A DNA stretch of 64,000 nt from Marsupella aquatica (taxonomy: Eukaryota; Plantae; Marchantiophyta), in NCBI GenBank assembly GCA_973895155.1, contig OZ316898.1, forward strand, positions 14,910,330-14,974,329, given 5' to 3'. A program made the position numbers and the translations under genes. The notes under the pieces are model-generated. The model was given only the letters and a program-made list of their open reading frames with translations, made no database searches and was not told the origin of the DNA. Below, piece by piece: positions 21,328-64,000 of the stretch. The first letter of the stretch is position 1, and the number at the start of each line of letters is the position of its first letter.

Positions 21328-21905
21328 TGTCTATTTAATCATTATAGGGTTGAATACAAAAAAGATTGACACACACGAGGGTGCGTGACCTACAATCATA
21401 GTAAGTACCACCCTTTAATTAGTTAGTTTCTTTACAACAATTAATAGGATTGTTGTATATTACAATGTCTACTGGGCATTCATTTGAATGTCAATAATAT
21501 CATGCCTTAACATCACCAAACTAAGGCACCACTAACTAATATTATATCTTAAATAAACTAACTAACTAACTAACTTGTCTATTTAATTACTATAGGGTTG
21601 AATACAAAAAAGATTGACACGCACCAGGGTGCGTGACCTACAATCATAGTATCACCCTTTAATTAGTTAGTTTCTATTGCTTTGACTCAATCAGGCATGG
21701 AACCATATAAAATCAGAAATCATTGAAAGTTGAGTTCACTTGAAGGTGTAACTATAATTATTATTTATTAATAGGATTGTTGTATATTACAATGTCTACT
21801 CGACATTCATTTGAATGTCAATAATATCATGCCTTAATATCACCAAACTAAGGCCCCACTAACTAATATTATATCTTAAATAAACTAACCAACTAACTAA
21901 CTTAG
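21328..21905. repeat. ~245-bp direct repeat pair (second copy has an insertion), each with one motif-A palindrome
   Basis: TGTCTATTTAAT...TATAGGGTTGAATACAAAAAAGATTGAC at ~21328 and ~21576. Motifs at 21371-21386 and 21619-21634. Confidence 0.85.
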
Positions 21906-21997
21906 ACAATAAGACTTGTCTAAACTTGAGTTCTCTGGCTACTACTATTCTGAGTTGCCTTTTAAACTATATGCTAAACTACATGCTTCATTACTGT

Positions 21998-24900
21998 CTA
22001 GGATTTGTCACTTGCTATGCATGTCAAGAGATAGTCTCTTGCCTTGGCAGCAACATTCTTTGGAATTCCTACCAGCCCTGTCACTGGTCCTTTGCGTACT
22101 TTGAAACACCACAAGGCAGAGGAAACATCTATTGTCTCAGCTTCCTTGTATATTGGAGCTAGATCACGTTCCCATTTCTTATCCCAAGAATCTGCCCACC
22201 GCTCTCTTGGCTGCCAGTCTGATTGACCACGTTGCTTCTTTGCCATAAATGGTCTAAACCACTCAACGCCACATACATGAGTAAGAAGGTTTTTGTTCAT
22301 TCACTGGTCCTCTACCATATCTGTAACAACTAACCCCATATGGACGGGATAAACATCCAGGTCTGAGTCGTCCGGCCGTACCAACACATAACAGCCCTTC
22401 ACAACATCAACCCTAGGGTTAAAACTCTCAGGAGGTTTATCTTTTGCTGGTCCCACATAATCCACTGTTGCCTCCAACTCACATGCCACATTTCGATATT
22501 CTGGTGGAACGTGCTCTCTCCATATTGATAAAGGCCAAAACCCGTATTCCAAGTTGTGTGCACCTTCAGGTTCATATTGCACCTGCTCACCCTGTAGAGT
22601 ATCTATAATGTCATTCCAATAATTGATGAGAGTTGTCCAACGTCGCTTTGGTTCTTCCTCTTTTGTTCGCTTTAGAATAAACTCAAAGAATGACACATGC
22701 TTCTTCAACCCTATCAGCACTTCAGGAAGCATTTTCAACTCCATCATTGGTAGCCGTTTGGGCACCCCAATTGGGATGTGAGGACTTTTGTCATCTTTCC
22801 ATGACCACATTTCAATACCTTCCTTGGGTAACCATCCCTGATCAGTTGATTTCATTTTGTATTGGAAGCATGGCATACTATCATGACGAACATAGAACCT
22901 AAACAGCCTGGGTTTTAAATGCCCCACCAATGCCTCAGGGCCCTTCAACATGAATGGAGCTAAGTAGTTTTTGAAATCTAGGACCTCCTGTAGAAAATGT
23001 GGGGCTGCATTGGGTGTCCTTGCTCTCATGAACAAGGACATTAACTCAGGCAATGAGTATGTAGGGTTATGCATCATTCACTCTGAAAAATGCCCGAACA
23101 TACCGTCAACGTCCTCATGAGTATGCCCAACCACCATAAAACCAAGATGAACCTCTTCAAACACCTCCCTTGCCGTCAACAATGACAAATAAGCCATCAT
23201 GTATTTGTTCTTGTTGTCTGAGGCACAATTATCCAGTTGTAGCTTCAATACTCGTGGAAGGGGCCTGAACTTTGGTGCCTCAGGTGCTGCATCACAATGT
23301 AACAATCTCAGAATACTTTTAAATAAAACCCTAGTCAGACCCTAAACCCCAATTTAGGGTTTAGGGTTTAAACCCTATTAATGAAACCTTGGCTAGGAGG
23401 AGCAACAACTACACAAAGTAGAGTGTCAGTGTTGTGAGCTTATATATTATTAAATAATAATAAATTAAAGGATTGTGAGTAAAGTACCTAGGCTTGAGAT
23501 GTAGGCAATGTCATCCTCAAATGCTCTAAGGACACTTGCCTCCAAGATATCTTTTCTCCCAAAAAGGAGGTCTTTAAAAAGACTTGTCGAGTCTGGCCCC
23601 TCCACAAGTGATTTGATCATTGGATTTGGGTTTTCCAACATCCTTAGTATTGAATCAATTGACCCAATAGTGATGTTGACATCACCTGGCCACACTCCAA
23701 CATGATATTGGGCTATGGCCTTGGGACCATGACCATGAGTAAGGATACCAGTGACAGTAATTGGGAACTTTTGGGCACCATCCACATGCTTAGGATTGAA
23801 GGGCATTCTTGGGAGAGTTGTCTTTGAATGATCCATCTTATCATGAATAAGGCATAACATTTCCTTTGGACGATGGATGGACTCATATCTCCAGGTATGA
23901 TAGCACATTCTTTGCTGTGTGTGGTCTTGGTGATGTTCCTCCTTGTCACGCCTTAGGCCCTCTAACTCTTCCTTAGCTCCTGTAAGGTTTGCTTTCCGTT
24001 GAAGCAACTCACTACAAGTTGTACACTTTGAAAAGTTGTTGCCCTTTTTGTGACGCAAGAACTCCCTGAAATACATCTGATGTAGATGACTCAAGGTGGG
24101 TTGGGAAATTGGAGGAAGACCAGCCTCTTTGTTGACAACATTAACCCTATTTCTAATATTCTCCCAAGTAGGATTTGTTGGCAATTCCCTCAAAATCATC
24201 TTTGTATTATCTGCCATGGTTCTCAACTTGGCTGGATGATGATCAGCTGCCTCCTCAATAATCTCTTTCATTGACATGAACGCTTGAGATAATTTCTCGG
24301 ACATATGCCTTTTTCCAGCATTACCATGGGTACCTATGTTCATTCCAGCCATCACAGTCTTCTTCAAGGCATAAAATTGAGTCTTTCCTCTTGAATGAAT
24401 GATTCTCCATGCCTCCAAGCACAATACTTTGCCCTCCACTGCTAGAATCCTTTCTCCAGTACCCAAGTGTATTGTATTTTTAATAGCCTTGATTTCCTCC
24501 TCCTTGCGCTCCGCAAAAGATTTTGACCACCACTTTTGCCTAATTGCCATAGCCAAGTTGCGGTCCAAATATTGGCAACAATGTTCACTACAACAGTCCT
24601 TAGTGTTTATCAACAACACATCTTGACATGCCAAAGATGTGTCTCTTCTAGATGTCTGGGAAGATGAACTCTTTCTTTTCCTACTTTTATGGACGTAGGA
24701 CCGCTTGCCACTTGTTGGAGATGTGTTCCCTCCCACAGCTTGCCTGATGTTGTGGAAAGACAACAAGTTGTGCCATCCTTGGCAAAGAGTTGGTCCATCG
24801 ACCAAGATTTTAAGCAATCTCTATGCTTCAGATGATCTATGGTAGCTCCCTCGACAAAATTGTTGATCAGAATTCCCACATGTGTATTCCCAAGGGTGAC

Positions 24901-25377
24901 ATCCCCAAGCTTCACTATAGGATCTAGAACATGTATAGTTGCCACTGCAAAAATCAACTTGTTCTCATCCACCACCTTTATAGGCATGCCCATCCACAAG
25001 GCCTTTGGTAAAACTACTTCCACACCAGACCGACTCTCATTATGGTTGTTCCCATCAGAATTTTGATTGACTGGATCTTGATCATCACCAACAGTGCCAA
25101 ACACATCCTCCGATTCCATGGGAGATAAAAAAAGCTGATTCCTTTCCCATACAAGGTAACCCCCAATCATGTCCTTCAAAAGTTCGCCATCTTCGCAGAG
25201 AATGGTCTCATCAAAAACTTCCTCCAATAGAAGAAGAACTTTGTCCACCCCAAGAGGAACATTGTGACAAACCCTGGAAGGATCAAGACTTATCACGCGA
25301 CCTTTTCCAACCTGTTTCTCACGTATGCCTATTATAACTTGTCCGCCTTCCCTGATCCAGACTGTCGATGTCACCAT
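21998..25377 (-). pseudogene. Sola-like (DUF7869-type) DDD transposase with two N-terminal En/Spm Tnp1-like beta domains and a C-terminal SH3/Tudor-like region
   Basis: FSKCTTC, LIHDKMDHSKT, LQLDNCASDNKNK and FMVVGHTHEDVDGMFG. N-terminal GKGRV...CHNVPLG...LVW pattern occurs twice. Intron ~23310-23490; internal stops and a frameshift. Confidence 0.75.
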
Positions 25378-25419
25378 AATAATTATGATCCTGCACATCA
25401 GAGAATATCACTGTAAGCG

Positions 25420-26130
25420 TACAGTCCTGTCACGTCCGTCAACTTCACTGCACTACATTGTCCTGTCACGTTGGTCAACAAGCAGAATGTAGTCAATGCA
25501 TTGCACTGCACGCGACTGGTCGCGTGACCCTAGAGGTACCACACATACCGGCAACAGACTATGCATGGTCCGTTAGTCATTTCAAGTGAATGAGAATGAC
25601 CACAATCGATTACGATCAATCATTTCACATCCACTTAGAACAAATGAGTGGACAGTACCAGTTTACCAATGAGTGGACACTGGACAATCAGTAACTATTG
25701 AGGAAGTATGTAATGCTAATAAGCGCCAGTAAAACATCCGTTAACTGCATTGTCTTGTCACGACCGTCAATAAGTAAGCAGAATGTAGTCAATGCACTGC
25801 CCTGCACGCGACTAGTCGTGTGACCTTAGTCAGAGGGTGTAGGGATAATAGGGTCTACGACGTAGAAGCTAGAAGCCTAGGCCCAAACTCTAGCTCGTAC
25901 TTGGTACTTCATAAGTAAGATACAATTGCGCGTGAGACAGGAAGATAAATTACGGATCTGAAGGCATCACACATACCGGTAACAGATTATGCATGGTCCG
26001 TCAGTCATTTCAAGTGAATGAGAACGACTACAATTGATTACGAACAATCATTTCAACTCCACTCAGAAAAAATGAGTGGACAGTACCAGTTTACCAATGA
26101 GTGGACACCGGACAGTCAGTAATTACTGAC
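25420..26130. repeat. Duplicated blocks in the divergent promoter region of element A
   Basis: CACACATACCGG...GAGTGGACA at ~25541 and ~25968. GCAGAATGTAGTCAATGCA...CACGCGACT at ~25482 and ~25778, each with motif A. Confidence 0.8.
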
Positions 26131-26443
26131 CCTCATAAGAAATCTTAGTACTTCACTAGCAATCAGTATTCCTGGGGCGGTCGCCAAACGTGAAATTAAA
26201 GCCATAATTAGAGGACAACTGAACTTCCTGCCAATTCTAATACGCGCCAGTCAAACGCACACTCTCTTCTAGAAACCACTATCTACAATGACTAGTGGAG
26301 ACTAAATAGTATAAAGCATTGAGATGATCCTTACTGCTCATTCCCTCACGCATTCCACTTTTTGGCTACTGGATAATCTATTCGCACATCAGCTCTCTCA
26401 TTTCCAATTCTTAGTCTCGGTCCGCATCTCTTGTTTGAAGGGC

Positions 26444-26963
26444 GATGACTACTCCGCTGAGCTCAAAGAATGAGGGTGTTCCGATGGACGATTTTGAAGG
26501 TTCGACGTATCAAATTTGTGGTACTCCTTACAGAATGTGTTAGCGATGTAATATAATATTTACGGTGACTAAATCTGGTCAAATGTTTTGTGAGAGACGA
26601 CATTGTTCGCCACATTTGTCGATGGAAGATCAGATGGAGAGCAATCTGACAGAGATGACTACAAAGATGGCATCAGGGGAGAAGTTAAAGGGCAAAGCCC
26701 TCGTCGAATCCGTTTCGGGGGGGAAGAAGTTGAAGGCCAAAGCATGCGTCGAATCCATTTCGGGGGAAGCAACAGCAGACGCTAAGATTGTCAAGAAGGA
26801 GGCCAAGAAAATGGACGCACCAAAGAAAAGGCAATTAGAGATGAACGAAGATTCTGATTTATATTACAGAAAGAGCAAGCCAAGAAAATCTATGGACGTT
26901 AGGACTTGGGCCTCGGGGGTTTCACTTCCACAAAAATGGCACATCATGTGCGACGAAGGATAG
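26444..26963 (+). CDS. Small Lys/Glu-rich hypothetical protein, probably two exons
   Basis: ORF 26565-26963 with an internal KLK(G/A)KA.VES.SG repeat. Upstream ATG exon and TATA-like AGTATAAA at ~26308. Confidence 0.35.
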
Positions 26964-27535
26964 GGTCATTTTATTGGTTTGAAGGGAAGACTTAAGAATT
27001 TTTGTAGATGAACAATAGGGTCTTTTAAATTCAATTTTGAGACTTATAAGAACATTAGGGTCTTTCTAACCAAAATTTTGGAATATTTCAAGAATATTCC
27101 AACTTTATAGGGGTTGAAAAATAATATTTTTTCTTACATTTTAGGGGGTCTGAGGCCTAAAAACGTCGCAGGGGATGGGGAGGCATCCATATAGTGAGAC
27201 CCCCGAGACTTGGGCAAAGGAAGAATTCCTGGATTCAAGGGAATCCACACCAGACATCGATGAGTGGATGCCTTCATCTTGGAATGACTGACTCGATCGA
27301 AGTCTACAATATTTTGAGTAGTCAAAGATTAGAACTATAGATTCAAGAGTAGTTCAAGTTAGAACTTGTTATAGATACTGTGTAGCTTAATTTTGTCCCG
27401 TGGAAAATAGTGTTCAAAAGACCAGGTCAGTTAAATTCCTGGATAGTGCTAGTGGATATGGATTCCACATCCGAAGTCCTTCGGGATCGATGTAACCATT
27501 TTTGCAATCAAGGAAAAATCATCCACGAGATTCCT

Positions 27536-29700
27536 CTGACCTCTAAAACATTAACGCGACCGGGCGCGTGATGAAACGAAGACGTTGGTTTTAAAATAGA
27601 TTTCTGGCCAATTCGCTAGGCTGTCAACTACAATAAACAATATCAAAAGACCTGAGATAAATTGGTTCACGCGACTGTGCGCGAGATGAACTACATGTGT
27701 AACCGAAAAAATAGGTCATCCAACTAACAAGTTGAGATCAGTCAGATCTGAGAAATAAAGTGCGATTATGTTTAAGAGTGCAAAGCTTTTGCTGACCTCT
27801 AAAACATTAACGCGACCGGGCGCGTGATGATACAAAGACTTTGGTTTCAGAATAGATTGCTGGCCAATTCGCTAGGCTGTCGACTACAATAAACAATATC
27901 AAAAGACCTGAGATAAATTGGTTCACGCGACTGTGCGCATGACGAACTACATGTGTAACCAAAAAAACTGGTCATCCTACTAACAAGTTGAGATAAGGCA
28001 GATCTGAGAAATAAAGGGCGATTACGTCTAAGAGTGCAGAGCTTTCGCTGACCTCTAAAACATTAACGCTGTGACACCTGAATTTTTCGCAAAATCAATG
28101 GAAGATGTAAATAAGATGCAAAGTTCACGAATTAATTGCATTTTGGTACCCAAATGCCCAACTTTACCTTGCTGACAATACTTATGAAGGATGCTTCAAA
28201 GAGGTGTCCCATGGAGACCAAACTTATGTATTTCAAAGATAGATTTTTGTTACCCATATACCCTAGTTATTTAGTGATCTTTTTCTACCTTAGTTTAGTA
28301 CTCAATTTTTATTACCTTTTTTTTCTAAGTTTTGAAAAGGCATGACTTTTCATTTCCCCTTTTTATGCTCCACTTAGACCTATAAGATTATTGTTTTCCT
28401 TTGTGTTTTTCAGTGAAGCTTGTATTCAGTATTGCAAACTTTTGCAAGTTTCCCTCCTTCCTTTGTAATCATTGCTTTCGAGAATGATTTATGAATGAAG
28501 TAAAACACTTCCTTTGTGATGTAATGAATTTATTTCAAAAGATTCCTGTTGGTGCCTGAGTTTTCATTACAGATTTCCAAGATCAGATGAATTCAAATTA
28601 GGATTACTTGTGGGTCAAGGATCGCTAGGAATTCAATGATAAATGTGGATAAAAAGGAGCAAGATTCTGATTTCAGAATAGTTAGTACCGTTACCCATAC
28701 TTTGGCATACCCACTAGTGATAGATCGGAGTTGCGTATCGCCGAAGTTCTATCCATGTTGACGGCATTTTAGTGAGTATCATTGTATCGGTCACCAGAAA
28801 GCTACTTTGGTGTTGGTGAGCAATTATCCTTTCTGTTTATATTTTCATGGTGATGGAGAAGAGCAATTGAGGCAAGATTTGTTGCAATCTTGTTAACACA
28901 ATAAGACCAGAATCCTTTTTGAAGGAGTAGCAGTGGAGATTCAATCCATTGGACCTTGGTTCTAAAAGCTTTTCCATAATCCATGACTTGGGAATTAATC
29001 TTTTTTGTTCATTTTGTTAGTTTATCCATTTGTTTCTCTTTTGTCTGAAGATTTGGTTGAGTGATACTCTTAAGTCTTCAAAACAATTACAATCATTCAA
29101 TTCATTCTTATTTTGTTCTTAAAGGGATCGAAACCTTGGTCTTTAAGTGAAAAGTGTCACTTTTGATTCTTCTTGCTATACCACAAACGCGACCGGGCGC
29201 GTGATGAAACAAAGACCTCGATTTTAAAATAGATTGCTGGCCAATTTGCTAGGTTGTCGACTACAATAAACAATATAAAAAAACACGAGATAAATTGGTT
29301 CACGCGACTATGCGCGTGATGAACTACATGTGTAACCAAAAAATTAGGTCATCCTACTAACAAGTTGAGATCAGGCAGATCTGAGAAATAAAGGGCTATT
29401 ACGTCTAAGAGTGCAGAGCTTTTGCTGACCTCTAAAATATTAACGCGACCAGGCGCGTGATGATACGAAGACTTTGGTTTTAGAATAGATTTATGGCCAA
29501 TTTGCTAGGCTGTCGACTACAATAAACTATATCAAAAGACCTAAGATAAATTGGTTCACGCGACTATGCGTGTGATGAACTACATGTGTAACCGAAAAAT
29601 CAGGTCATCCTACTAACAAGTTGAGATCAGTCTGATCTGAGAAATGGACCTCGATTACGTTTCATTTCGCTAGGCCGTTGACTACAATAAACAATAGCAA
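27536..29700. repeat. 256-bp tandem array, ~4 copies, two motif-A palindromes per unit, interrupted by a solo LTR
   Basis: Unit start CTGACCTCTAAAA at 27536, 27792, 28048 and 29425 (= 28048 + 256 + 1116 + 5). Confidence 0.93.
28070..29185. mobile_element. Solo LTR, 1116 bp
   Basis: TGTG...CACA termini and 5-bp TSD AACGC (28065-28069, 29186-29190). Removing it restores the 256-bp period exactly. Confidence 0.92.
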
Positions 29701-29899
29701 AACGTACGGACAACTATACTTGAACGCCATACAATTTTAGACTAGAGAATTCATTCAGATCCTCTACTAGTACTTTTGATACATTACTTCTGTATTGGAC
29801 TTGAAACACGGATTGATCAAAATCGGAGTGAGAAATTGGACCATAACTTCATTGACTCAATTCATGCATTGAATGCGTGATTTAAGGCAACTACTCTCC

Positions 29900-31830
29900 T
29901 CATTTATTGCGGAATTAATGCTGATTGATACTTACAAGTTATTCAGTTGCGTGTGGTCTCAACGATGTTGGCGGCAACCCTTTGATGTTGGCGGCAACCC
30001 TCCTCCCAGCCAAGCCTCTTCCTTCCAGCGTAGCCTCCTCCTCATCCCAGCCAACTAAGCCTCCTCCTTCAAACTCCAATTTCCTTGAGTATCATGACCG
30101 AATCCCACCACCAGAGAATGACAACTTGTTGATCGTATCGAGATCAAAATCCTTGACCAGACAGTGATTTCAGAATAGCCGCTCTTTGTTGGTCCGCTAG
30201 AATGCTTTGATGAATGAGGCAGACTATGGAGGTTCTAAATCTTTGTCATCTCGCTTTGTCGCAACTCTCTCCCGCTTGATCGGATGTGCCCTCCCCAAGA
30301 AGGTGATACAACAAGAACTACGCCAGCGTTGCTTGAATGAGCTCCGCCTCCGACTGGAATAGTCAAATGATCCAATCTGCTCCACCTCAAATGTGCCTTG
30401 GATCAGCCTCCGCTGAGAGCCCAGCTAGTATCCTGGTCAAGAGAAACTGAAAATGAAGAATGATCCGTGAGCAATGAGATCAATCTATTGACTCCATGAA
30501 GGATGTGTTCATCTGGACTCGATTTTGATTTTGAAAATTGGTTGAGTCTCCAGTCGTGAGAATCATTGTACAGGATTGATTTTGAGTATCGGTTCTCCCC
30601 GACCGTGAGAATCGTTTTACGTTGTTTAGAGTTTGGGTTTGAATTGGCAAGATAGAGAGTGGAGTACGGATCCGGATCCGACGGTCTCCACTACCAAAAT
30701 GGAATGATTTTGAAGTTCGCCTCCACTACGTGATGGAACGATCGTGAGAAAGTTGTCGTTTGTTCACATTTTGGATTTGAATTGGCAGATATAGTGAAGA
30801 TACGGATCCGGATCCGGGGGTCCCCACTAACAATCGTTCGCAGTTGCATAATTACCGGTTTAAATTTCAAATTGGTGATCAAATAGAAATCTCCTTTAGT
30901 ACGGCAAATCAAAAGGAATTCGGTAATCTTTTTTTCATGATTGCCTAGTTTGTTGAGTCGATGGTGGAGTGTACGGAGATCATCTAGAACCTTCCTATCG
31001 CTAGGCTGTTATTAGGGTTATGCTAAAACGATACCCTAATTAGTCCTTCCTTAGTGTCGGTGCCCACGGTCTCAAGTTCACTGTTCATTGTTGTTGTTTC
31101 TCGCTCCCTAGACTTTCGTGCGCCTGCTCTCGTTGCTCTCGCTCTCGCTCCTGCCCTGGATTTCATTTTTGTTGTTGCAGCTCATTCGTTGTGGTCAGAT
31201 GCTTGTCGGCGCGTTGCAGCTCTTAGTAGTTATCGATCGTTTCGACCAGGAGCTCGTTGGCGCATTGCAGCTCGCATTTACAGCTCGTATTCACTTTTAG
31301 TTTGCTCGAAGGGATTCTTAGGAGCTCGTTGGGTTTGTTGCAGCTAGTTTTTTGGGAGTGCTTGTATCAGCTCGTGTCAGCCAATTTTAAGCTCATATCA
31401 GCTCGATCAACGTGTTTCAGCAGCTCGGACTACTTTTTGGCAGCTTGTTTCAACTCCTTTCATTCATCATTCAGGTTTGTTTCAGCTCTTTCAATCTTCA
31501 GGTTTAGTGCGCTTTTATTCATGCTCAGTTTGTCTATCGACAACTTTGATTGTACTTCTGGAAGAGTCTTTTTAACTCGACATAATGAGTTCCTTAGCTT
31601 AAGCACATGTTATTCAATTGGCAGCAGCGAAGCTCTATGTATAGAAGTATAGAAGTTGTGTTGTTGTTGCTTAGCATATTAATATCTTCAATCTTATATT
31701 TACTTTCTGGAATGCTGCAGCAAGGTCTTCAAGTGCTTGGACGTCAATCTCTCAGACGATTACATCAATTTTTTAGAATTCAGGTGCAATTTCTATATTT
31801 TCTGCTGGTGTTGATTGTTGTTTGCTAAAA
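29900..31830 (-). pseudogene. Decayed coiled-coil-rich coding sequence
   Basis: Minus strand shows E/Q/L/K-rich repeated segments (GAGCTGCAA-type) broken by many stops. No family recognised. Confidence 0.3.
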
Positions 31831-32269
31831 TTTCTCTTGATTGTTAAGTTGAGTTTTCATAATGCAATTTTTTTGTAAACTCAAATATGTCTGAATCATA
31901 CAAACTCACTAATTAAAATACAACCTGAATCGTCTTAAGTAAGTCATTACAAACCTGCACGCTGTGAATTTATCATATAAACTCTCATGTTATGTGAATC
32001 TCATTACACTGAATCCTTTAATTGACGAATACAACCAGTAGACTGCTAAATTGAATCATCTTAGCTGAATCATTCTCTAAACTGAATTCCTTGCAATATG
32101 AAAACTTCTGATATATAATAGTTTCACAATGACAAAGCTCAAACATCTGAATTATTGTATAGTTCATGAATGAATACAAATGAATGAAATCATGCTTACT
32201 CGGATTTCCTTGTCCGTACGGGTCAATAATCACAGTTGTATCACTGTATTATCCTAGTGTCCAAAAGTT

Positions 32270-33215
32270 GTTTGAGCTGTTGACGCGACCAGTCGTGTGA
32301 AAATATTGTGAGGTTCCATTTAGGATCAGTTGACGCGACCAGTCACGTCTGAGGTAGCTCTCTCATTGACTGGTTCTGTTAGAGGAGGTAAGGTTCCTTT
32401 TAGGACCAGTTGACGCGACCAGTCGCATGTGAGAAGGAAACATGATAGATTTACTGAGCGTGTACCATATCCAAATCTCCACAAGAAAGGTTCAATGGAT
32501 ATAGTTGTTTAGGTTCAGTTGACGTGACCAGTCGCATCTGAGGTAGCTCTCTCATTGACTGGTTCTGTTAGAGGAGGTAATGTTCTTTTTAGGACCAGTT
32601 GATGCGACCAGTCGCGTGTGAGAAAGAAACAGGATAGATTATTGAGCGCGTACCATATCCAAATCTCCACAACAAAGGTTCAGTGGATATAGTTGTTTAG
32701 GTTCAGTTGACACGACTAGTCGCATGTGAGGTAGATCTCTCATTGACTGGTTTTGTTAGAGGAGATAACGTTCCATTTAGGATCAGTTGACGCGACCAGT
32801 CGCGTCTAAGGTAGCTCTCTCATTGACTGGTTCTGTTAGAGGAGGTAAGGTTCCATTTGGGATCAGTTGACGCGACCAGTCGCGTGTGAGAAGGAAACAG
32901 GATAGATTATTGAGCGCGTACCATATCCAAATCTCCACAAGGAAGGTTCAGTGGATATAGTTGTTTATGTTCAGTTGACGTGACCAGTCGCGTCTGACAT
33001 AGATCTCTCATTGACTAGTTCTGTTAGAGAAGGTAACGTTCCATTTAGGATCAGTTGATGCGACCAGTCGCGTGTGAGGTAGCTCTCTCATTGACTGGTT
33101 TTGTTAGAGGACGAAGCAACATTTATGATTTGTCACGTTGTGACCCGAAAAAATCACAGTCTCTCAAAGAATTGTTTATATATTCTGATTTGTAGACGCG
33201 ACCAGTCGCATGGAA
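32270..33215. repeat. Composite array of ~80-bp and ~108-bp subunits with ~11 copies of GACGCGACCAGTCGCGT
   Basis: Motif at about 32282, 32331, 32411, 32520, 32600, 32708, 32788, 32868, 32976, 33056 and 33195. Confidence 0.92.
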
Positions 33216-33805: not shown

Positions 33806-33866
33806 CTTACGCGACCAGGCGCGTCGTATGTCTTTTAACAATGTTTTGTGATATGATAAAAGCAGG

Positions 33867-34433: not shown

Positions 34434-34467
34434 TGGATAGGTTCTTGTTCTTAATCTTTTCCATATT

Positions 34468-49929: not shown

Positions 49930-49965
49930 CCCTAAACCGTAAACCGTAAACCCTAAACCCTAAAC
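49930..49965. promoter_or_regulatory. Telo-box-like (CCCTAAA)n tract upstream of cargo gene B
   Basis: CCTAAACCGTAAACCGTAAACCCTAAACCCTAAA. Confidence 0.45.
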
Positions 49966-53900: not shown

Positions 53901-56900
53901 GGCCCTTGGAGAAGAGGATAATACAGAGCTGGAAGGAGTAAGGCGTCCTTATGCCAATACCATGTCTTCCCAGAGCAGACATATGTATTTTAGGTGGTCT
54001 CCAAATCTATTTACAACTTTTTTTGATGCGGCTAAAGAAGGTACCGAACCCCCTGTAGTTAGTAAATTGATCTCATGGTGCAGAAAGCTATTGCGGGAAG
54101 GTTTGCGTCAAAATGCCTGGAGAAAAGGGGGAAGCGAGTGAAGACTGGTGCAGATTTAATTCTGATACATATGGGAACAGACACGCGTATGGTCGAGGGT
54201 AAGTCCACCCCGTTGTGGAATTCATTCCGGGAGGATGACTTGAACCGGGTTCAGGAGTTTGCTCGAGATGTCCTTGATTCCGAAGGACTGTTTGCCATCG
54301 TGCACAGTGGTTCGCTTCGGCACTCAACTTGCATTTATGATGCATTAGTTTACGAGAATACCAACTGGGGGTTGAAAGAAAGCTTCTTTATCTGGAATGA
54401 CACACCCACCTACGATGGTAGGACTGGGAAGCGAGTAAGTCCCATCAATTACCTACTTCTTCATTTATTTTTTATTCCAATGACTTACTATCCTAAACTG
54501 AGGAAGTCTGACCTCTGAATATGTTTGGCCGATCCAAAGCGAATATCTCAAGCTAGACCTGTGGGGGTTTCAATCTGCTGTGGAGATATGCCCAAAGAAT
54601 GATGTGGCACCAATTAGTGCAGAGCTCGATATGAAGAGTAGGAATGGGCTAACGAACTATACATCCAAGAAGAATCAGGTTAACGATCCTTTTGCGGGCA
54701 CATTGTCGCCAGCAACGCTCCAATGTATCATCTAATATACAACACACCCTGGGGCAACTATCCTCACTTTCAACGCACAGTTTGGGGCAATATTCAAGGC
54801 GGGTGAAAATTGCGGGCGGATGGTGTTTGGGACTGAATCCTATCCTCACTTCGGAACTTGTGCGTAAGACCAACTGGCACAACTGGTTGGAGTGATCTCC
54901 CCGGAGGAGGAAGAGGTGGTCCGTTCAAAAGCCAATCCAGAAAAGCGCAAGAAGAAAAAGCCGGCAATACTCCCAACAACATGTAAGTTTTCTAGCGTTT
55001 GACGTTGTTCATTTCATATTTGCTTGCTCGTTGCAATGGTTGACAATAGAGGGATACAAGTCAGCGGCCTCGCCGATATGTATGCATGTCGGCTGACCTC
55101 GCTGACATTCATAGTGTCTGGCCTCCTCTACAAGCGAGGGCAAGTCCTAACTTGAGATGCATGTTGGCGGACCTTGCCAAGATTCATTCCTCTACATGCA
55201 ACTCAGGAAGAGTCATCTTGGCGGGCCTCTCCAAGATCCGTCTAAGGAAGAGTGATCTCGGCTGGCCTCTCCAAGATCCATCTCAGGAAGAGTTCATCTC
55301 GGCTGGCCTCTCTGAGATCCGTCTCAGGAATAGTCATCTCGACTGGCCTCTCCGAGATCCGTCTCAGGAAGAGTGATCTTGGCTGGCCTATCCAAGATCC
55401 GTCGCAGGAAGAGTCAATCTCGGCTGGCCTCTCTGAGATCCGTCTCAGGAATAGTCATCTCGGCTGGCCTCTCCAAGATCCGTCTTAGGAAGAGTCAATC
55501 TCGGCTGGCCTCTCTGAGATCCGTCTCAGGAATAGTCATCTCGGCTGGCCTCTCTGAGATCCGTCTCAAGAATAGTCATCTCGGCTGGCCTCTCCGAGAT
55601 CCGTCTCAGGAAGAGTGATCTTGGCTGGCCTATCCAAGATCCGTCTCAGGAAGAGTCAATCTCGGCTGGCCTCTCTGAGATCCGTCTCAGGAATAGTCAT
55701 CTCGGCTGGCCTCTCCGAGATCCGTCTCAGGAAGAGTGATCTTGGCTGGCCTCTCCAAGATCCGTCTTAGGAAGAGTCAATCTCGGCTGGCCTCTTTGAG
55801 ATCCGTCTCAGGAAGAGTCAATCTCGGCTGGCCTCTCTGAGATCCGTGTACTGAAGAGTCATCTCGGCTGGCCTCTCCGAGATCCATCTCAGGAATAGTC
55901 ATCTCGGCTAGCCTCTCCGAGATGCGTCTCAGGAAGTCATCTCGGCTGGCGTCTCCAAGATCTGTCTCAAGAATAGTCAATCTCGGCTGGCCTCTCTGAG
56001 ATCCGTCTCAGGAATAGTCATCTCGGCTGGCCTCTACGAGATCCGTCTTAGGAAGAGTGATCTCGGCTGGCCTCTCCGAGATCCGTCGATCCATGTCGAC
56101 TACCTTCCCCGACAGATGCCTTCTTGTTTACGTCTATTTTGGGCGCAATACATTATTTGATTGGATTTAAGTATAACTTAGTAGCAGTTCCCGACAGGAC
56201 TACCGAGTCAGCTATAGCGGAATGGGACAGCCAGGACAGACGGCTTGTCAAGCTCGCATGGGAGGAAGCTTCGGCATATTTCTTGCCGGAGAAGTTAACC
56301 CTTTCGTGCTACGCTGCTGATACCTATCATGAAGAAATAGTGCCTCGCTGTGTACAAGAGAGAAAAAGGAAAACTCTCAAATTTGTCAATGATAGGGCAA
56401 AAGAAGCTCAATCGGATGAGAGTAGCTCGGTAGGAAGTGACAGTCTCCAAACTCACCATGTAAGTATAAGATTATCAAGCTCCAGTTCCGAAGAGTAATG
56501 TTTGAATGAATTTACCTTCATTGCAGCTCAGGAGAGACCTGAGCAACCAGTGAATGAGGGGCTGACTCCCCGGGCAGGAGTGAAAGAGGTGGGGCTTGCA
56601 AACAAAGGAGTGCCCGCACAACAGCAACCATCCAAATTTTTGGCGATAGTGAAGAAGGCATTGGACCCCAAGGCGGACCAAAAAGAGGTCATAGTGACAA
56701 TCGAGGATGTGCACTTGACGAGGGCACATTTAAAATGCTTGAGGCCAAAAAAATGGATCACTTGCGACGTCATCAATGCTTACATTGCTTTACTGGAACG
56801 AAGAGCACAAACCCTTCATAAACCCAAGGCCATGTTATTGCCAACACATTTTTACCAAGTGATGACAACTCCAGAATATAACTTCAACGCAGCGTTGGCA

Positions 56901-57305
56901 TATTGGCGGGGCATTCAAATGTGGGAGCACGAGTACGTTTTAATCCCCGTCTACCGGCCAAAACATTGGGTACTAGTTGTGGTTGATACTACCTTGCGGC
57001 AACTGCATTTACTTGATCCGCTTGTGCCCGAAGCACAGGATGGCACATAAGTGTTCAAAGTAGCTCAGTTTCTTTCGGACCTCTCCATCTTGCGGGGTCG
57101 TACCTTGTTATGTCCATTAGAATGGCCACGCATTTACCGAGATAACATTCCAGGTCAAGGGGATGATTACAATTGTGGTGTATATGTCATTATCTACATG
57201 GAGCGTATTTCTGGAGGCGGCGTACTGAACTTTGACCCTGCACTTATAGACATCATGCGGCAAAAGATTGTTGTGGACCTTGTCTGCCAGACAATTACCC
57301 TGTAG
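50916..57305 (+). pseudogene. Cargo gene B: ParB-like domain, helical region, acidic linker, degenerate N6/N4-MTase fold, Ulp1 SUMO protease (about 6 exons)
   Basis: ParB: IPLCRLMP...VAKLKKGF...FWVFDGNHRYTAW. MTase: ADLILIHM, then FARDVLDSEGLFAI, then SPATLQCII*YTTHPGATILTFNAQFGAIFKAGENCGRMVFGTE (54541-54982 frame). Ulp1: WITCDVINAY, HWVL, LDPL, QGDDYNCG. Predicted GT-AG introns 51630-51748, 53080-53356, ~54435-54539, 54983-56115, ~56460-56531. Confidence 0.72.
55200..56088. repeat. 40-41-bp tandem minisatellite (~22 copies) of motif B, inside an intron of gene B
   Basis: Unit ATCTCGGCTGGCCTCTCCGAGATCCGTCTCAGGAAGAGTC(A). Confidence 0.95.
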
Positions 57306-57725
57306 AGAGGATGGAAGATGGAGACGCAGCCTAGTGGAATTTAGTTCAGAAAATTGAGATAGACAACATCGTTGTAAAGTACAAAGTTTAATAAAAAGTG
57401 TGTCATCCAAACGTTCTTAATGTGGCTCCTATTTGATATGCTATTTTGTACACGTTGCTGGGTATGTTTTCATCTTGGCGAGCTCAGCCGAGATGGAACA
57501 ACACTCCAAGGATATCTCAGAGAGGGCGCCAAGATGGTTAAAAAGGGCACCAAGATGGTCAGAGAGGCAGCCGACATTACTAATTGTCCGAACCAAAACA
57601 ATGTCGGAGTGGACTCCGACATAGGGTTTGACTGTGGGTGTGAATTAAGTCCATGTCGGCGGCGTCGCTGAGTTTCGGGCATAGACTGATATCAGTGACT
57701 GATGAAAGTCACTGATAACTGATGA

Positions 57726-60400
57726 AGTTGTGTACCTCATTTTGAAGAGAGCGACGAGTACACGACACCTTCCCCAGAAAAGATACTTCCATTCTTTGAA
57801 AGTATTGTTAGTCAATTCGTCCAATGTGGGGAATGGGCTATATGCTTTGGCCAGGGAACAAACTTGATTCAATGCTTAATGGTAAGTTTTGAGATTTATA
57901 TTTTGGGGTTTCAATTTTAAGATTATTTAGATTTTTATATTCTCAATTAATATTGTGAACTAATTTCGGCTTTTTTTACAGGATGCTGGATCCAATGTAA
58001 AATATTCCTGCCCTATGGCAACGCATAGGGAGTTGTCTTGTTTCTTGCAACACACCATGGCGACAATTGATACAACGCTGTCATTGATTGACCTAGTACG
58101 GGCTAGTATAGAAAAATGTATAGATAAATTAATGAAGTACCGTCCATCCGTAACTGCTCTCAGGGCTGATGTTTTGGATGTCCTCCACGAACAACATATC
58201 CCTGATAATATTTGTAATCAATTATTGCAAGAGTATGCCCTCTCTAAAGATTCCGATCGATTGTACATTCGACCAACGGAGTACCCTCGTGGGCCAATCC
58301 AAGGTAGGTTACTTTTGAACCATCTTACTTTTTCTTGCATCACGCGAACATGCACGTGGACATTCTTAACATTTCTTTTCACGCGAATATGCGCGTGAGT
58401 CATTCTTATCTAATGATCTGATTTTATTCAGATCAAGTTGATTGCGGCTTCAATGTTGAGGATGCAGGGAGCAATGGTGATGCGGATGGTGAGGGGGAAG
58501 GTGACAAGGAAGGTGACGCGGATGGGGATGTCAATGACCAAGATCCAGAGTGGATGACCGATACGCAGAATGACGTCAGAGATTTCGACAATAGCAAGGA
58601 AGAGAGTGACGGAGAGGAGATGAAGGACGCTGAGGATGCTGAGGACGCTGATGAAGAGGACGAGGAGATGGAGGGTTCTGAGGACGCTGAGGACTCTGAT
58701 GAAGAGGCCACACAGGAGCCTTGACATGAGGTGGACCGAGAGGAGGCGGCCCGGCAGGAGGAGGCCAGAGAGGAGGAGGCCCGGCAGGAGGAGGCCTGGC
58801 AGGAGGCGGCCCGGTAGGAGGAGGCCCAACAAGAGGCGGCCCGGCAAGAGGAGCTTCAAAAGAAGGAGGCGACCCGGCAGGAGGAGGCCCGACAAGAGGC
58901 GGCCCGGCAAGAGGAGCTTCAAAAGAAGAAGGCGACCCGGCAGGAGGAGGCCCGACAAGAGGCGGCCCGGCAGGAGGCGGCCCGGCAAGAGGAGGCGGCC
59001 CGGCAGGAGGCGGCTCGACAAGAGGCGTCTTGACAAGAGGCGGCCCGGCAAGAGGAGCTTCAAAAGAAGGAGGCTAAGAAGAAAAAGGCAGCAACTAGAA
59101 AAGAAATTGCCGCGAAGAAGAAGGAAAAAACCAACGCTGAGGAAGCCCAGGCGGAGAAAGCCGAGGCTGAGAAAGCGGAGGCGGAGAAAGTGGAGGCTGA
59201 GAAAGCGGAGGCGGAGAAAGCCCAGGCTGAGAACGCGGAGGCAGAGAAAGCCCATGCTGAGAAAGCCTAGACTGAGAAAGCGGAGGCTGAGAAAGCCGAG
59301 GCTGAGAAAGCCGAGGCTGAGAAAGCCCAGGCTGAGAAAGCAGAGGCTGAGAAAGCGGAGGCGGAGAAAGCCCAGGCTGAGAAAGCCCAAGCTGAGAAAG
59401 CAGAGGCTGAGAAAGCGGAGGCGGAGAAAGCCCAGGCTGAGAAAGCCCAGACTGAGAAAGCGGAGGCTGCGAGAGTCCTTTTAGTGACAGAGGCAAATAG
59501 GGCCAAGGCGGAGAGTGTGGCGGCTGAGAGGCCGCTGGCCGAGAGGATGGCGGATGAGATCGAACAGACCGCAAGACCGGAGAGGGTGGAGGTGGAGAAG
59601 TTGGAGGCGGAAAAGGTCCATTCCACAAGACTGGAGAGAGAAGAAGCCGCAAGACTGGAGAGGGTGGAGGCGGAGAAGGTGGAGGGAGCGAGGAAGGAAG
59701 CCGAGAGGGCCAAGGATCTTCCGCTTATTCCTGAGGCACAATGTCTACCAAAAATAAAGCTGAATTTGAAGAAGCCTTCTTCACCCTCAGTTGCAGTTAA
59801 GAAGAAAATATTAGACTATTTTCTTCGCCCGGAGTTTGAATTTAACGATCCACCCTTAAGTACGGTCTCATTGGATGATTAGAATAAATATTCACTGGAG
59901 CAGCTCCGAGTCCAAGCCGTCCTTGCTTTGCAATATTGGAAGGGTCTTTTGATTACCAAGGAGAAGACTGCCACTGCATCCAGAATGGAGACAATCATCA
60001 ATAATATCCGCTTTTCCGAGAATCGAGTGCAAGACCTAGGAACGTCTTTGGCACCAGACTCGGCTCAAGTCGTTAAGAGACTAACAACTGACTTGACGCG
60101 ACCGGGTTCGTGGTCTCAACCCCGATATACTGCAGAGGTTACTCACGCAGAAATTGTGGCACCGGATATTTTGGAATCGGATTCCCAGATTGTGGAATAT
60201 TTAAATCAAATGCCACAACCATTCAAAGGTCTTCCCGCCTCATCGCTCCAACCTTCGCAAACTGGTCTGGTGGAGCGATCACTGCGGTCTTGAGGAGGGC
60301 TGAAGGATGTTGTTGCGAAGGAGGCACCCAAGAGATTAGCTACGAAAAGGCCGGATCCACCCAATCCAAAGGTCATTCGCAAGCTATAAGCTTAAAGTTT
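57726..60400 (+). pseudogene. Cargo gene A, continuation: C-half of MTase-like fold, acidic tract, EAARQE/EKAEA charged helical repeats
   Basis: PEKILPFFESIVSQFVQCGEWAICFGQGTNLIQCLM, intron, DAGSNV, in frame with ORF 58015. It lies in the same genomic frame as ORF 36987-37628. Confidence 0.55.
58735..59470 (+). repeat. 15-bp coding microsatellites (GAGGCGGCCCGGCAG and GAGGCTGAGAAAGCC)
   Basis: Encode (EAARQ/E)n then (EAEKA)n in the frame that continues into ORF 59484. Confidence 0.9.
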
Positions 60401-60521
60401 CTATTATAGCCGTCATTATTTTATTATTGATTTGTTATTGTTTCTGTTTTCTGAGGTAGAACCCTTAGGCTACAACCTCAGTACGTTATTTGAAGGCATA
60501 CTGAAATCTCTATTTTTTGCA

Positions 60522-61311
60522 GTTTTTTGAAAATTTGGCTAGTCGAATAGATCAATGCCTTGATCCTTCTAAGGATATGGAAGAGCTATTGACCAAGTTC
60601 TTACAACACTCGATCAAGAGGAAACATATGATGTGTTTGAGACCGCGCGAGTTGCTCACCGATGATATAATTAACGCTTATTTGAGTTTTCTCAAACTGA
60701 TTCTCGATAGAGTTGGAAAGTCAGACCTTGTCAAATTCTTCCAAACACACCATTTTGAGCTTCTCTCCATGGATCCTACCATTTTAGATGAGGAGAGAGC
60801 AGCTTGGACAAAGGAGTTTCCGCTAAAAAACAGTGAATACGACAAACTGGTCTTTCCAGTACACAATGCTGTGAAAGAACATTGGTCGTTGGTAGTTGTG
60901 TATCCAAAGGAGAAACGGCTCGAGTACCTAGATTCTCTACTTCATAATCGACAAAATCTTGGGGTGCTAGATATTGTTGGGAAGTATTATGTCGACGAAA
61001 TTGGCTGGAGAACTGGTGTCAACTTGGATCTCTCAGGTTGGGAACGGATATATCGGAATGATATTCCTCACCAGAGTGACGGCCACAGTTGTGGTGTGTT
61101 TATCTTGAGATACGCCAAGTGCTTGTGTCAAGGAAACGAAATTAATTTTGCCACGGATCAAATTGAGAAATTTCGTAGGGAGATAGTCTTGTCGTTATTT
61201 GACATGGACTTCCGCAAGCCGACGTCCGCAAATAACCTAGTTATCAGGATCCGTGCTGCTATGATTGACATTTCCGGCAGAATTCCAGCACTGAACGACC
61301 GTCTTGTACAG
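60522..61311 (+). CDS. Ulp1/C48 SUMO protease domain of element A (probably an exon of gene A)
   Basis: LLTDDIINAY, EHWSLVVV, YLDSL, HQSDGHSCG: catalytic H, D, Q, C intact. Flanked by splice sites. Confidence 0.88.
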
Positions 61312-61571
61312 GTAATACACTTCATTTCAGTGTCTCTCTTTGTAGTCACGCAACCGTTCGCGTTATAAACTTATTTTCATTTCTTAATGTTTTACAGAAG
61401 CCTATCCCGAAACCCCCTGATCGAGTATCGAAGGCACCAATCCGGAAGTCCGGTGATCGTCTGGAGGCGGGAAACAAACAGACCGTTCTAGTACGTTCTC
61501 CAAAACCTGCGGCACAAAAATCACAGATACAGATGACGCCTAATCCATCGACAAAGAAATCACCGGTTTAG

Positions 61572-62302
61572 AAGAGACTTGTAATTTTTGATCTGAATCG
61601 GGTACTTATCTGGTCAGAGAAGATCAGCCCTGGGATGTCCATTCGGTCAAGGGTGTGAGACAAATGCACAAGGTTATCTATCCAAGGCCTGATTTAATGG
61701 AATTTCTTGAGAAGGTGGCAGATCTATACGACATTGCGATCTGGTCGTGCATGTTCAAACGGAATATTCTATCTTGTGTAAGGCTGATACTTCGACCCGA
61801 AGTTTTGAAACGTATTAAATTTATATGGGGACAAGAATCAACTCAACCTATTGGGAAGAATAATAATGACATCCCCTTATTTGTCAAATGTCTCTCCGAC
61901 ATTGCCGCCGATATTAAAGATTACAATATCGAGAATGTCATTCTTATCGATGATGCTGCATATAAGACGAGCCTTAATAACTTCTATTCATCGCTGTATC
62001 CCGGTGCATATTCTGGGCTCAATGATGACCTATTTTTTAGAAAGAAACTATATCCATATCTATGCGACATGTCAATTGACAAGTTGACATTCCGCGAGCT
62101 CCTTAGTGGATATGGGATTCCAACGTTCTCTCAAGAAAATCTTGAGAGAGATTATATTGATAAGACAAATCTTTGGAGGAGAAATGTGATCATTCGTAAT
62201 CAGGGGAATACAGACCATTTAGAAAAGTTTAACGAATATATGAAATACTTATTTGCCGAAAAAGACCGTGCTATAGAAGCCCGGGATAAGTCCAATAAGT
62301 AA
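61572..62302 (+). pseudogene. FCP1/NIF (CTD small phosphatase-like) domain 1
   Basis: KRLVIFDLNRVL, PRPDLMEFL...YDIAIWS, FIWGQ, KCL, NVILIDD; frameshift near 61650. Confidence 0.8.
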
Positions 62303-62433
62303 ACATTTATTGTTTATTATCAATTATTATTTATAAATTGATTGAAATTGAACTTTATATTTTGGGAGTGACGCACCCGGTCGCGTGGTTGTTTGCAATT
62401 GCATAATATGAGAATCGAATTGTTCATTTACAG

Positions 62434-63141
62434 GTGTCTAAGTGGAGCAGGTCGCATTAACTTCTAATTTTAGGACTAGAAAACTTCCTGTGCTCTATTT
62501 CAAAATATACTCCTCAGCTCAAGTCGACACCCGGAATTTGTATCGGATCTCTATGTGTCGTTTCGAGGCCGCGTCTTCATGATCTTATAAAATTCTGTTA
62601 TGATCATTTTGATGTGATGGTCTGGTCTATTCTCGACAATAAACTGGTTTATCAGATACTTTCAAAAGTGTTGTCGAGCACCGACCTGTCGCAGCTAATA
62701 TATGTGTTCACGCGGGATCATTGCTGGAATCTTGGTTATGTGAAGAAAAATTATAAGACTGTTGTCTTTAAATCTATCGAGAGACTACGTGATATGTTTC
62801 AAGATTATCAACCAGAGAATATAATCCAGATTGATGCCTGTCCTTCCCATACATGCCAGACAGTTGTATGCGGATTATTGTTCGCTAAGTCGTTTCAAGG
62901 ATCGTTGGATGATGTCTTTTTGAGGGATGACCTCATTCCATATTTACGAAAGCTATCAGATTCAAGGCTTTGTCTTGCGTTCGCTAACAAGTTCGATTAT
63001 CCCATCTGGTCGATTAGAAATCTACATCAAGATTGGGATCTGAACGAGGATATATGGGAGCATCTGTACGTGCAGAGACATGCGGATCCAGTTCTTATCA
63101 AGCACTTCAACAGACGTCACTTATCAATGGCCAGAGTGTAG
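62434..63141 (+). pseudogene. FCP1/NIF-like domain 2 (catalytic motif degenerate)
   Basis: LLILGLEN, RPRLHDLIKFC...FDVMVWS, ENIIQID, DDVFL...LIPYL. Confidence 0.7.
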
Positions 63142-63239
63142 AGGATGTTGTCTCTGTAATATGTGATGCGACCATTCACGTGACTACATCCATACGGGCT
63201 CATGCATCTTCTTGTGTTTCTCTACAGGAGATTCATTGC

Positions 63240-63924
63240 AGCAGAGAAAATGGGCTCATAGTTTTAGACGTGGAGCATCTACTCTGTTACACTGCACCGC
63301 ATTCCCGACTGATGGCGGTCTCAACTAGAATTTGGATTGGGAATATATACGTTTTTCCAAGGCCTCATCTTCACGAATTCTTGAGATTCTGTTTTGAGAA
63401 TTTTGATGTAGGGATCTGGTCCTCTCTTGGGAAGAACCTTTTAGATCAGATTTTAGCATCTATTTTTACTGCGATGGAAATGGCCTCATTTAAGTATATT
63501 TGGGATCAGTCTCATTGTTACTTATGCGATAGGGTGACATCAAATAAGCGGATATTTTTGAAGTGTTTTGAGAAGGTTGGAATTTATACGAAGGCGTATC
63601 TGCAGCAAAATATAATGCTTATCGAATCCGATGCATTTCATGTTTGTTTAGATCCTGTTGTTGGATCATTATTTCCGCCCAAATATTTTGGGTCGGTCGA
63701 CGACAGTTTCTTGATTAACTTGCTGATTCCGTATCTTAATTAGCAAGCTAGAAAAATCTTGTGAGCCGCTTGTCATTGCCAATGGAAGAGATTATCCTGA
63801 TTGGTCAGTTAAATCTATTTTTAGAGATTATGATTATAATCATACTCTATGGGAAGACCCTGTGATTCAGAGGCATGGAGATAGATCATATCTAGTAGAG
63901 CAATTTAACAGACGCCCAATATAG
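63240..63924 (+). pseudogene. FCP1/NIF-like domain 3 (catalytic motif degenerate)
   Basis: LIVLDVEHLL, PRPHLHEFLRFCFENFDVGIWSS, YIWDQSHC, NIMLIE; stop at 63741-63743. Confidence 0.75.
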
Positions 63925-64000
63925 GATGCTTCCGAAATAATAGTTGGCATGAGTTCAGATTAATTTGTATTGTCGTTCTAGAAACGATTTGTAAACTCCT

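Follow-up and report, generated by a model that had tools for sequence, protein, structure and literature searches.

In Arabidopsis, VANDAL transposons of the Mutator-like group (MULEs) encode an accessory protein, VANC, and carry short target motifs that are tandemly amplified in their own non-coding DNA and diversified per element. Ulp1-like genes are also found in plant MULEs, in those of the KAONASHI type. In red algae, giant Plavaka, Mutator and Zisupton transposons carry the genes PAG2 (N6_N4 methylase and SET domains) and PAG3 (a ParB-like domain with a 2OG oxygenase). Tandem inverted-repeat arrays adjoin PAG3 across these transposon superfamilies, and Petroll et al., who also draw the analogy to VANDAL/VANC, hypothesised self-binding and self-modification (bioRxiv 10.1101/2025.02.11.637652). 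The 21.5-kb Sola1 transposon of Ectocarpus, Sola1-1_Ec32, has a gene for a ParB-like protein with a DNA methylase opposite its transposase (Dinatale et al. 2025, PMC12477816), and green algal cases appear there as cited from Iyer, Abhiman and Aravind 2011. Here we compare these systems with a 64,000-nucleotide stretch of the liverwort Marsupella aquatica (assembly GCA_973895155.1, contig OZ316898.1, positions 14,910,330 to 14,974,329, forward strand), called the window below. In it one DNA transposon, element B, lies inside another, element A. Each has an accessory gene (genes A and B) ending in a Ulp1 SUMO protease domain, and each carries many copies of its own palindrome. We read the locus as holding a module for transposon self-recognition such as has been put forward for giant transposons of algae, whose protein would bind its own palindromes, likely for anti-silencing; we regard this as possible, although somewhat short of probable.

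The window has the layout of the algal modules: a giant transposon, a gene opposite the transposase, a ParB-like N-terminus and adjacent inverted-repeat arrays. It resembles the PAG3/PAG2 elements, by description and not by PAG3 sequence, in having a ParB-like gene beside inverted-repeat arrays, an N6_N4 methylase that is separate or linked, and a module that moves between superfamilies. However, the red algal ParB and methylase domains lie in separate genes, whereas element B has ParB, methylase-like and Ulp1 parts in one apparent gene, its methylase motif IV is degenerate and its host is a land plant. With VANDAL/VANC the locus shares Mutator-type elements, an accessory protein and amplified element-specific motifs, but its recognition module is ParB-like and its motifs are palindromes, not short asymmetric words. 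Pfam and the other library scans gave no match to a VANC-type family, although no search was aimed at VANC. Like Sola1-1_Ec32, it is a giant transposon whose accessory gene and transposase lie on opposite strands, with a ParB-like domain followed by a methylase in the accessory gene; for the Ectocarpus element, however, no Ulp1 or NIF is reported, no palindrome arrays are mentioned and the methylase is predicted to be active (PMC12477816). The first-pass annotation of the window had offered the architecture as possibly new. This was too strong, because ParB-like/methylase genes, adjacent inverted repeats and the same self-binding hypothesis have already been published for algal giant transposons. 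What is new here is the occurrence in a land plant, the Ulp1 and NIF effectors and the degenerate methylase; a literature search on land plants, including ParB with bryophytes or Marchantia, returned nothing relevant, its coverage being limited and no proof of absence.

Element B (37618..57738) is a 20,121-bp Mutator-type transposon inserted within an exon of gene A. It is bounded by imperfect terminal inverted repeats (TIRs) of about 55-60 nt (37618-37678 and 57685-57738), whose termini begin GAGATAA and GAGGTAC, and flanked by a perfect 9-bp target site duplication (TSD), ATTTTGAAG, at 37609..37617 on the left and 57739-57747 on the right. It thus shows the long TIRs and the 9-11 bp target duplication that define Mutator elements. 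The insertion in the exon is evident because the TSD flanks B, excision of B with one duplicate rejoins the reading frame of gene A without a stop, and an A-type relative on another contig (L005, see below) reads uninterrupted through the matching point. Reading frames were joined only in local scripts, across the B insertion for this frame check and as X-joined blocks for local hhalign comparisons; all database, family and fold searches were run exon by exon, with each exon as its own query. The termini of B were placed by reading its ends and comparing them with those of a related element of the liverwort Riccia sorocarpa (L004), in which the overlapping duplication contains TTGATCCGG. A 4-bp duplication at the B ends was rejected, since the Riccia element put the true termini 7 bp further out.

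The annotated nesting of two transposons is therefore sound, and the ends of B agree with its naming as a MULE. Its transposase supports this name less well. The transposase region (41680..45537, reverse strand) consists of open reading frame (ORF) pieces at 41683-42933, 42937-43194, 43198-43734 and 43738-44925, identified by 36-49% identity to ORFs adjoining the ParB-like gene at three Riccia loci (L004, L006 and L007). A SWIM-like CxC...CxH motif is readable at its C-terminal end, but the SWIM match in the L007 transposase is weak (E 0.02) and the Pfam MULE domain was matched neither by the B ORFs nor by the relatives' transposases searched. The transposase genes of the two elements differ. 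The transposase-like ORFs of A (22301..25398, reverse strand) gave only sub-threshold Pfam matches to DUF7869 (E 2.6e-4 and 2.3e-3), on which a literature search found nothing; the earlier label 'Sola-like' of A is not confirmed.

Each element has a palindrome of its own. Motif B, searched as TCGGCGAG-N-CTCGCCGA with at most three mismatches, occurs 34 times against 0.11 expected, and all matches lie within 37931-56079, hence inside B. Motif A (ACGCGAC-NN-GTCGCGT, at most two mismatches) was found 24 times against 0.00 expected, in every case outside B, at 25510-36410 and at 61348 and 62371. Neither pattern is present in the left flank (1-25509). The partition of the two motifs, already described by the first-pass annotation, matches the B boundary exactly; this pattern is real and far from chance. 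The same annotation held that each palindrome had been amplified in several unrelated arrays, and this is what we observed: both motifs are embedded in arrays whose units are otherwise unrelated, with lengths of 26, 40, 44, 128, 169 and 401 bp for motif B and of 35, 80/188/268 and 256 bp for motif A.

The largest arrays of motif B, with units of 169 bp (x 13.2) and 401 bp (x 2.5), occupy 46408..49845, between the divergent transposase and ParB-like genes. Arrays of the 26-bp unit, with higher-order periods of 52, 78, 101 and 261 bp, occupy 40649..41680. The coding blocks of gene B are separated by a 44-bp array (x 2.5; 53142..53252), which holds the sole perfect copy of the search pattern (53228-53244), and by a motif B-derived 40-bp array (x 22; 55202..56087) between the methylase-like and Ulp1 blocks. 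Motif A is spread, singly and in arrays, over 25510..33211, with sites at 25510 and 25806, 256-bp units at 27536-28069 and 29186-29660, and 80/188/268-bp units at 32319-33111. In addition, each motif has a single site ahead of the accessory gene of its element, motif A at 35008, about 50 bp before the ATG of gene A (35074), and motif B at 50825, upstream of gene B. Two motif A copies lie inside a 176-bp gap of gene A (36244-36419), which is probably an intron, because L005 lacks this gap. The placement of palindromes in introns, as originally described, is matched by this probable intron of gene A and by the spacers between the coding blocks of gene B. However, the sites are not strictly non-coding, because one motif B copy (43239-43255) falls in the transposase ORF and one motif A copy (61348-61363) at the very end of the gene A Ulp1 ORF.

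Gene B lies on the forward strand, and its first exon (51007..51630) encodes a domain with a predicted ParB/Srx fold. An alignment of 16 sequences gave an AlphaFold2 model with a pLDDT of only 48.5, while 96 sequences raised this to 91.8 (pTM 0.85). When this model was compared with the PDB by Foldseek, ranks 1-42 among the matches listed were all ParB/Srx-fold proteins, including ParB, Noc, sulfiredoxin (Srx), SbnI, KorB, PadC and SerK (E 0.04-2, probability up to 1.0). The structure search that had been proposed as a check on the fold thus came out in its favour, and on the strength of the model the ParB/Srx assignment holds. The exon 1 family comprises 15 close homologues and, at E <= 1e-3, 429 representative clusters. 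Across 16 family members DGNHR and residues P65, P68, L69, C70 and L72 of PRIPLCRL (pattern PxxPLCxL) are invariant. By sequence profile the domain had weak matches to DUF1015 (0.0056), DndB (0.066), DGQHR (0.096) and a ParB PHROG, and the PHROGs and NCBIfam searches gave weak matches only. The Pfam ParB model was passed by no B-type family member searched, no N domain of A or B type matched a curated ParBc-clan Pfam family at significance, and Pfam found only NIF, in a fern protein, among ten long family members.

The fold match by Foldseek relates this domain to the bacterial ParB-parS, SopB-sopC, RK2 KorB-OB and Noc-NBS systems, which are also alike in their palindromic targets of 13-16 bp and in having sites by the parB gene and in promoters. 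The sopC site of the F plasmid is reportedly an array of twelve 43-bp units with one palindrome each, and resembles the 40- and 44-bp arrays described here. The liverwort proteins differ from these systems in having no ParA partner, no recognisable helix-turn-helix (HTH), and DGNHR instead of the GERR box, as well as in their eukaryotic nuclear setting and fused effectors.

Exon 2 of gene B (51753..53159) encodes a conserved middle domain of about 450 amino acids (aa), which is joined to exon 1 in the gene models of relatives. It is followed by methylase-like blocks (54066..54864; N part 54066-54515, C part 54649-54864), recognised by homology to blocks at L004, L006 and a metagenome locus (L001), and by the Ulp1 (C48) domain (56502..57302; E 2e-8, 34.8 bits), in which H, D, Q and C are present. 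The domain order first proposed for gene B therefore stands for the ParB/Srx fold and for Ulp1, while the methylase is supported only in its C-terminal, AdoMet-binding motif I region and mainly through relatives. The C-terminal block matches PF01555 in L001 (E 4.1e-5, 24.1 bits) and L006 (E 1e-5, 26.0 bits), just below the cut-off of 26.7 bits. The family profile matched beta-class N6 methylases of the PDB, namely M1.HpyAVI (0.004), CcrM (0.029) and MboIIA (0.21). Motif I is recognisable in the B-type relatives; the window copy is homologous and more degenerate. At motif IV, (D/N/S)PP(Y/F/W) is replaced by HMGT in window B, by DLPT and by DMPS followed by G in Riccia, and by SLPN in L001. The N part matched no Pfam family and no PDB sequence. 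A 'dead methylase' is thus a fair reading of the B-type sequences, its N half being without independent support.

Besides the window copy, genes of the same ParB-like family were found in Riccia sorocarpa (GCA_046195345.1; L004, L006 and L007), in the metagenome (L001) and in the fern Adiantum capillus-veneris (GCA_014529385.2). Some Riccia copies, such as the P0039 locus, appear to be open. The three Riccia loci and L001 each have their own, differing palindrome arrays directly upstream of the gene. L004 is a 14.9-kb element with TIRs related to those of B, in which the transposase (reverse strand) is followed by the array and then by the ParB-like gene. Its array consists of 95-bp units with CCGGCGGA-N-TCCGCCGG, and 34 such palindromes are distributed across the element interior, one of them inside the accessory-gene ORF. 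Directly past the right end of this Riccia MULE we noted a segment of a long terminal repeat (LTR) retrotransposon (Retrotrans_gag, RVT_1; 16021-20093). The upstream palindrome of L006 is TTCCGGCGAG-N-CTCGCCGGAA. In L007 it is TGCCGGCGG-NNN-CCGCCGGCA, with a second variant, which has matched changes on both arms: CCGGCGG...CCGCCGG and CCAGCGG...CCGCTGG (8430-9080 versus 18877-19607) differ by CpG-type changes and dyad symmetry is kept. This second variant is also present downstream in L006, at 14334-15121. The L001 palindrome is quite different, TTGTTAACGG-NN-CCGTTAGCAA, and occurs 14 times, with sites at 82-1583, upstream of the gene at 2147. A further metagenome scan gave two short, uninformative loci.

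An A-type relative is found on the 9.4-kb contig L005, in which the region from the ParB-like domain to Ulp1 is nearly one ORF and collinear with gene A. Just three proteins came up as homologues of the A type, and L005 is the only one of the relatives of this type with DNA. It has an A-like palindrome upstream of the gene (site 3314), and this upstream block is conserved between window A and L005 within otherwise unalignable DNA. The ParB-like gene is thus preceded by palindromes in window A, window B, L001, L004, L005, L006 and L007.

Gene A itself, on the forward strand, is split by B into a 5′ part (35074..37616) and a 3′ part (57748..61365). The 5′ part, collinear with L005, has an N-terminal block, a ParB-like domain (35443-36243), the 176-bp gap and a middle or methylase-like part (36420-37616). 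The 3′ part is in frame at 57748-57917, continues at 57964-58395 and, after a stretch rich in E, K, A and R (about 58428-59900), ends in Ulp1 (60517-61365; Peptidase_C48, E 1.1e-20, 74.8 bits; H, D, Q and C present). This stretch consists of 15-bp and 60-bp tandem repeats that encode low-complexity sequence with several frames open on both strands, and L005 holds a comparable E/K-rich stretch. In the comparison of the A N domain with the B-type ParB profile, hhalign gave P 0.012 over 117 columns, with both boxes in order, and Pfam ParBc_2 reached a sub-threshold E of 0.085. The counterpart of DGNHR reads DGQHT in L005, GGQHT in protein P0172 and TDQHT in the window. On the other hand, hmmsearch with the B-type profile did not recover the A ORF, and the A-type domain profile had no match among PDB sequences. 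The ParB-like domain of gene A is thus suggestive, not proven. When the A and B proteins were compared by BLASTP and by segment-wise BLAST, only Ulp1 was alike.

If these observations are put together, the module would work as follows. The accessory protein, encoded opposite the transposase, would consist of a ParB/Srx N domain, a conserved middle region and an effector end, to which the B type adds, after the middle region, a beta-class methylase-like domain with a degenerate catalytic motif; the effector would be Ulp1, a SUMO protease, in the window and NIF, a phosphatase-like domain, in the fern relative. The non-coding DNA of the element (upstream region, inter-exon spacers and subterminal parts) offers many copies of one dyad-symmetric site of 15-23 bp. 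The protein would bind these sites as a dimer, in the way of ParB, SopB and KorB at parS, sopC and OB, and so become concentrated on its own element, where the effector domain could act locally on chromatin or the transcription machinery. The most likely outcome would be that the genes of the element are kept expressed (anti-silencing); the alternative is autoregulation like that of KorB. Binding, dimer recognition, any spreading and the chromatin effect are inferred, whereas the anatomy, the fold of the B-type N domain, the partial homology to methylases, the Ulp1 domains and the lineage-specific motif statistics are observed. The pairing of a transposon-borne ParB-like gene with element-specific palindromes is supported by the sequence comparisons, because the fold of the B N domain, the exact motif partition and the relatives' own upstream palindromes agree, and because elements with different transposase genes share the palindrome layout. 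In its favour is also that the effector ends vary (Ulp1, NIF or none) on a constant N-terminal module. The mechanism is plausible with this comparative support, and the transposase must still be taken seriously as an alternative binder.

Several observations weigh against such a module. The Foldseek E-values of the B N domain are marginal (0.04 and above) and its sequence profile matched no PDB sequence. Pfam and PDB sequence searches revealed neither an HTH nor another DNA-binding domain and gave no match for the middle domain, and the N-terminal domain of bacterial ParB binds the nucleotide and does not read parS. In gene A, the domain order once thought to be the same as in gene B is clear for Ulp1 and weak for the ParB-like domain, but is unsupported for the methylase: hhalign of the X-joined blocks gave E 0.18 over a motif of only 26 columns, the B-type methylase N and C profiles recovered no A or L005 block, there was no Pfam match, and A and L005 do not share the putative motif I. 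Moreover, L005 has one good palindrome site and no arrays. A further locus, L008, was considered as a transposase-less test case and set aside as ambiguous, its upstream sites (6 against 1.2 expected) not being significant. The Riccia relatives have no Ulp1 by Pfam, so deSUMOylation would not be integral to the module. Finally, both window genes are pseudogenes and these copies are dead. Gene A has in-frame stops at 35419-21, 36774-76 and 36972-74 besides the B insertion, and gene B at 54733-54735, in the C part of the methylase, and at 57048-57050, in Ulp1.

The palindromes could instead be bound by the transposase when the transposition complex is assembled, as happens at the subterminal repeats of En/Spm-CACTA or Ac, with the ParB-like protein otherwise employed. 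We consider this unlikely but by no means negligible. Motif B copies do occur subterminally (37931-38190, with a repeat arm at 57472-57522), and the L004 motifs lie 430-2800 bp from its left and 900-1750 bp from its right end. The largest arrays stand in the upstream region common to the transposase and ParB-like genes. In addition, the transposase is present and co-varies with the motif at every transposase-bearing B-type locus (window B, L004, L006 and L007), which also counts against our reading. The earlier idea of one palindrome per protein lineage is supported insofar as the Riccia loci and L001 each have their own palindrome, but the same can be said of the transposase lineages. However, elements A and B have the same palindrome-array layout despite their different transposase genes, and the sites of window A, L005 and L001 adjoin a ParB-like gene that has no transposase adjacent to it. 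Most copies are internal, in the inter-exon spacers of the accessory gene and not at the ends, and the red algal arrays adjoin PAG3 across superfamilies (bioRxiv 10.1101/2025.02.11.637652).

Alternatively, the arrays could be satellite or hairpin-prone repeats that arose by replication slippage or foldback insertions and have no dedicated binder, or they could be targets of host silencing through small RNAs or CpG methylation. Giant transposons often gather tandem repeats, the elements here are dead, and the CpG-rich motifs show the decay typical of methylated DNA (15/28 mismatches of motif A are CpG transitions). Yet one palindrome is embedded in several arrays of otherwise unrelated units and is met again singly at conserved positions in promoters, its dyad symmetry is preserved by changes on both arms, and the palindromes differ by lineage while their placement is the same; this makes such an origin improbable. 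Slightly less probable still is that the ParB/Srx domain acts enzymatically, as a nuclease, an NTPase or a kinase-like protein, in transposition or DNA processing and is only incidentally accompanied by palindromes: the fold does include nucleases, sulfiredoxin and serine kinases, which are also among the Foldseek matches, DGNHR resembles the DGQHR/DndB type and no DNA-reading domain was found, but the palindromes stand upstream of the gene in window A, window B, L001 and L004 to L007 and the domain is fused to effectors of chromatin or transcription type, not to DNA-processing domains.

Both elements also carry small ORFs that had been annotated as split-F-box genes. Three lie in A (33422..34998, forward strand) and two in B (38448-38861 and 39778-40584, reverse strand), and the five are paralogous, with the conserved blocks LIPGLPD..V...IW, RKWRHL(V/I)TNS..WA (after an insert of 25-35 aa) and FR.S.R..PPID. 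While the shared family is thus evident, the F-box assignment stays below the Pfam threshold: the matches (E 0.015-0.05) cover the second conserved block only, and the two B ORFs, with no Pfam match at E <= 0.1, are labelled F-box-like by their paralogy to the A ORFs. The predicted CTD-phosphatase-like genes were recovered downstream in A as three NIF (FCP/CTD-phosphatase-like) ORFs (61655..63740, forward strand), with Pfam NIF matches at E 2.8e-8 and 1.1e-13. In the fern protein P0084 a NIF domain (residues 955-1129) is fused to the ParB-like domain. Where DxDxT can be read, it is degenerate, with DVEHL in the window and DVNGV in P0084, and, as with the methylase, the NIF domains may be inactive.

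Upstream of the B transposase ORF, an open coding tandem repeat of 132 bp (x 4.6; about 44926-45537, reverse strand) encodes WEDxGDxDTPVKEK-type units, and its DNA holds a degenerate B-motif-like palindrome, ATCTCGAAGACCCCCTCTGAGAT. Element B also contains the plant telomere-type repeats CCTAAAC (x 3.6) and ACCCTAA (x 5.3) at 40589-40613 and 49929-49965; one abuts the start of an F-box-like ORF and the other precedes the ParB-like gene by about 1 kb, and they may be telobox-like promoter elements. The extent of A is less clear than that of B. Its proposed left end at 21371 is uncertain, because a tandem duplication of about 248 bp (21330-21660) covers that position, and its right end falls outside the window. 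The sole clear host gene is an intact single-exon BAHD acyltransferase gene in the left flank (14513-16414, forward strand; Pfam Transferase, E 3.6e-83).

A broader proposal, which we consider doubtful, is that land-plant transposons of at least two kinds share a targeting module which is portable and combines a ParB/Srx domain, a DNA-reading middle domain and a dead methylase. Such a module would load on parS-like palindromes and deliver exchangeable effectors (Ulp1, FCP/NIF) against silencing, and protein and site would co-diversify, so that nested or co-resident elements could act without cross-talk. The nested pair offers a natural test of specificity, with two related modules at one locus and non-overlapping palindrome sets. 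To judge from the exchangeable effectors (Ulp1 and NIF in these elements, SET and 2OG oxygenase in the algal ones), the levers of anti-silencing would be SUMO, the tail of RNA polymerase II and marks on histones or DNA. The ParB-like family behind the module is large, with its 429 representative clusters, and is without a Pfam model. If the ParB-like protein does bind its own palindromes, transposons would have arrived a second time, and independently, at the effect of VANDAL/VANC, through a prokaryotic-type module that recurs in algae (red, brown and green), liverworts and ferns.

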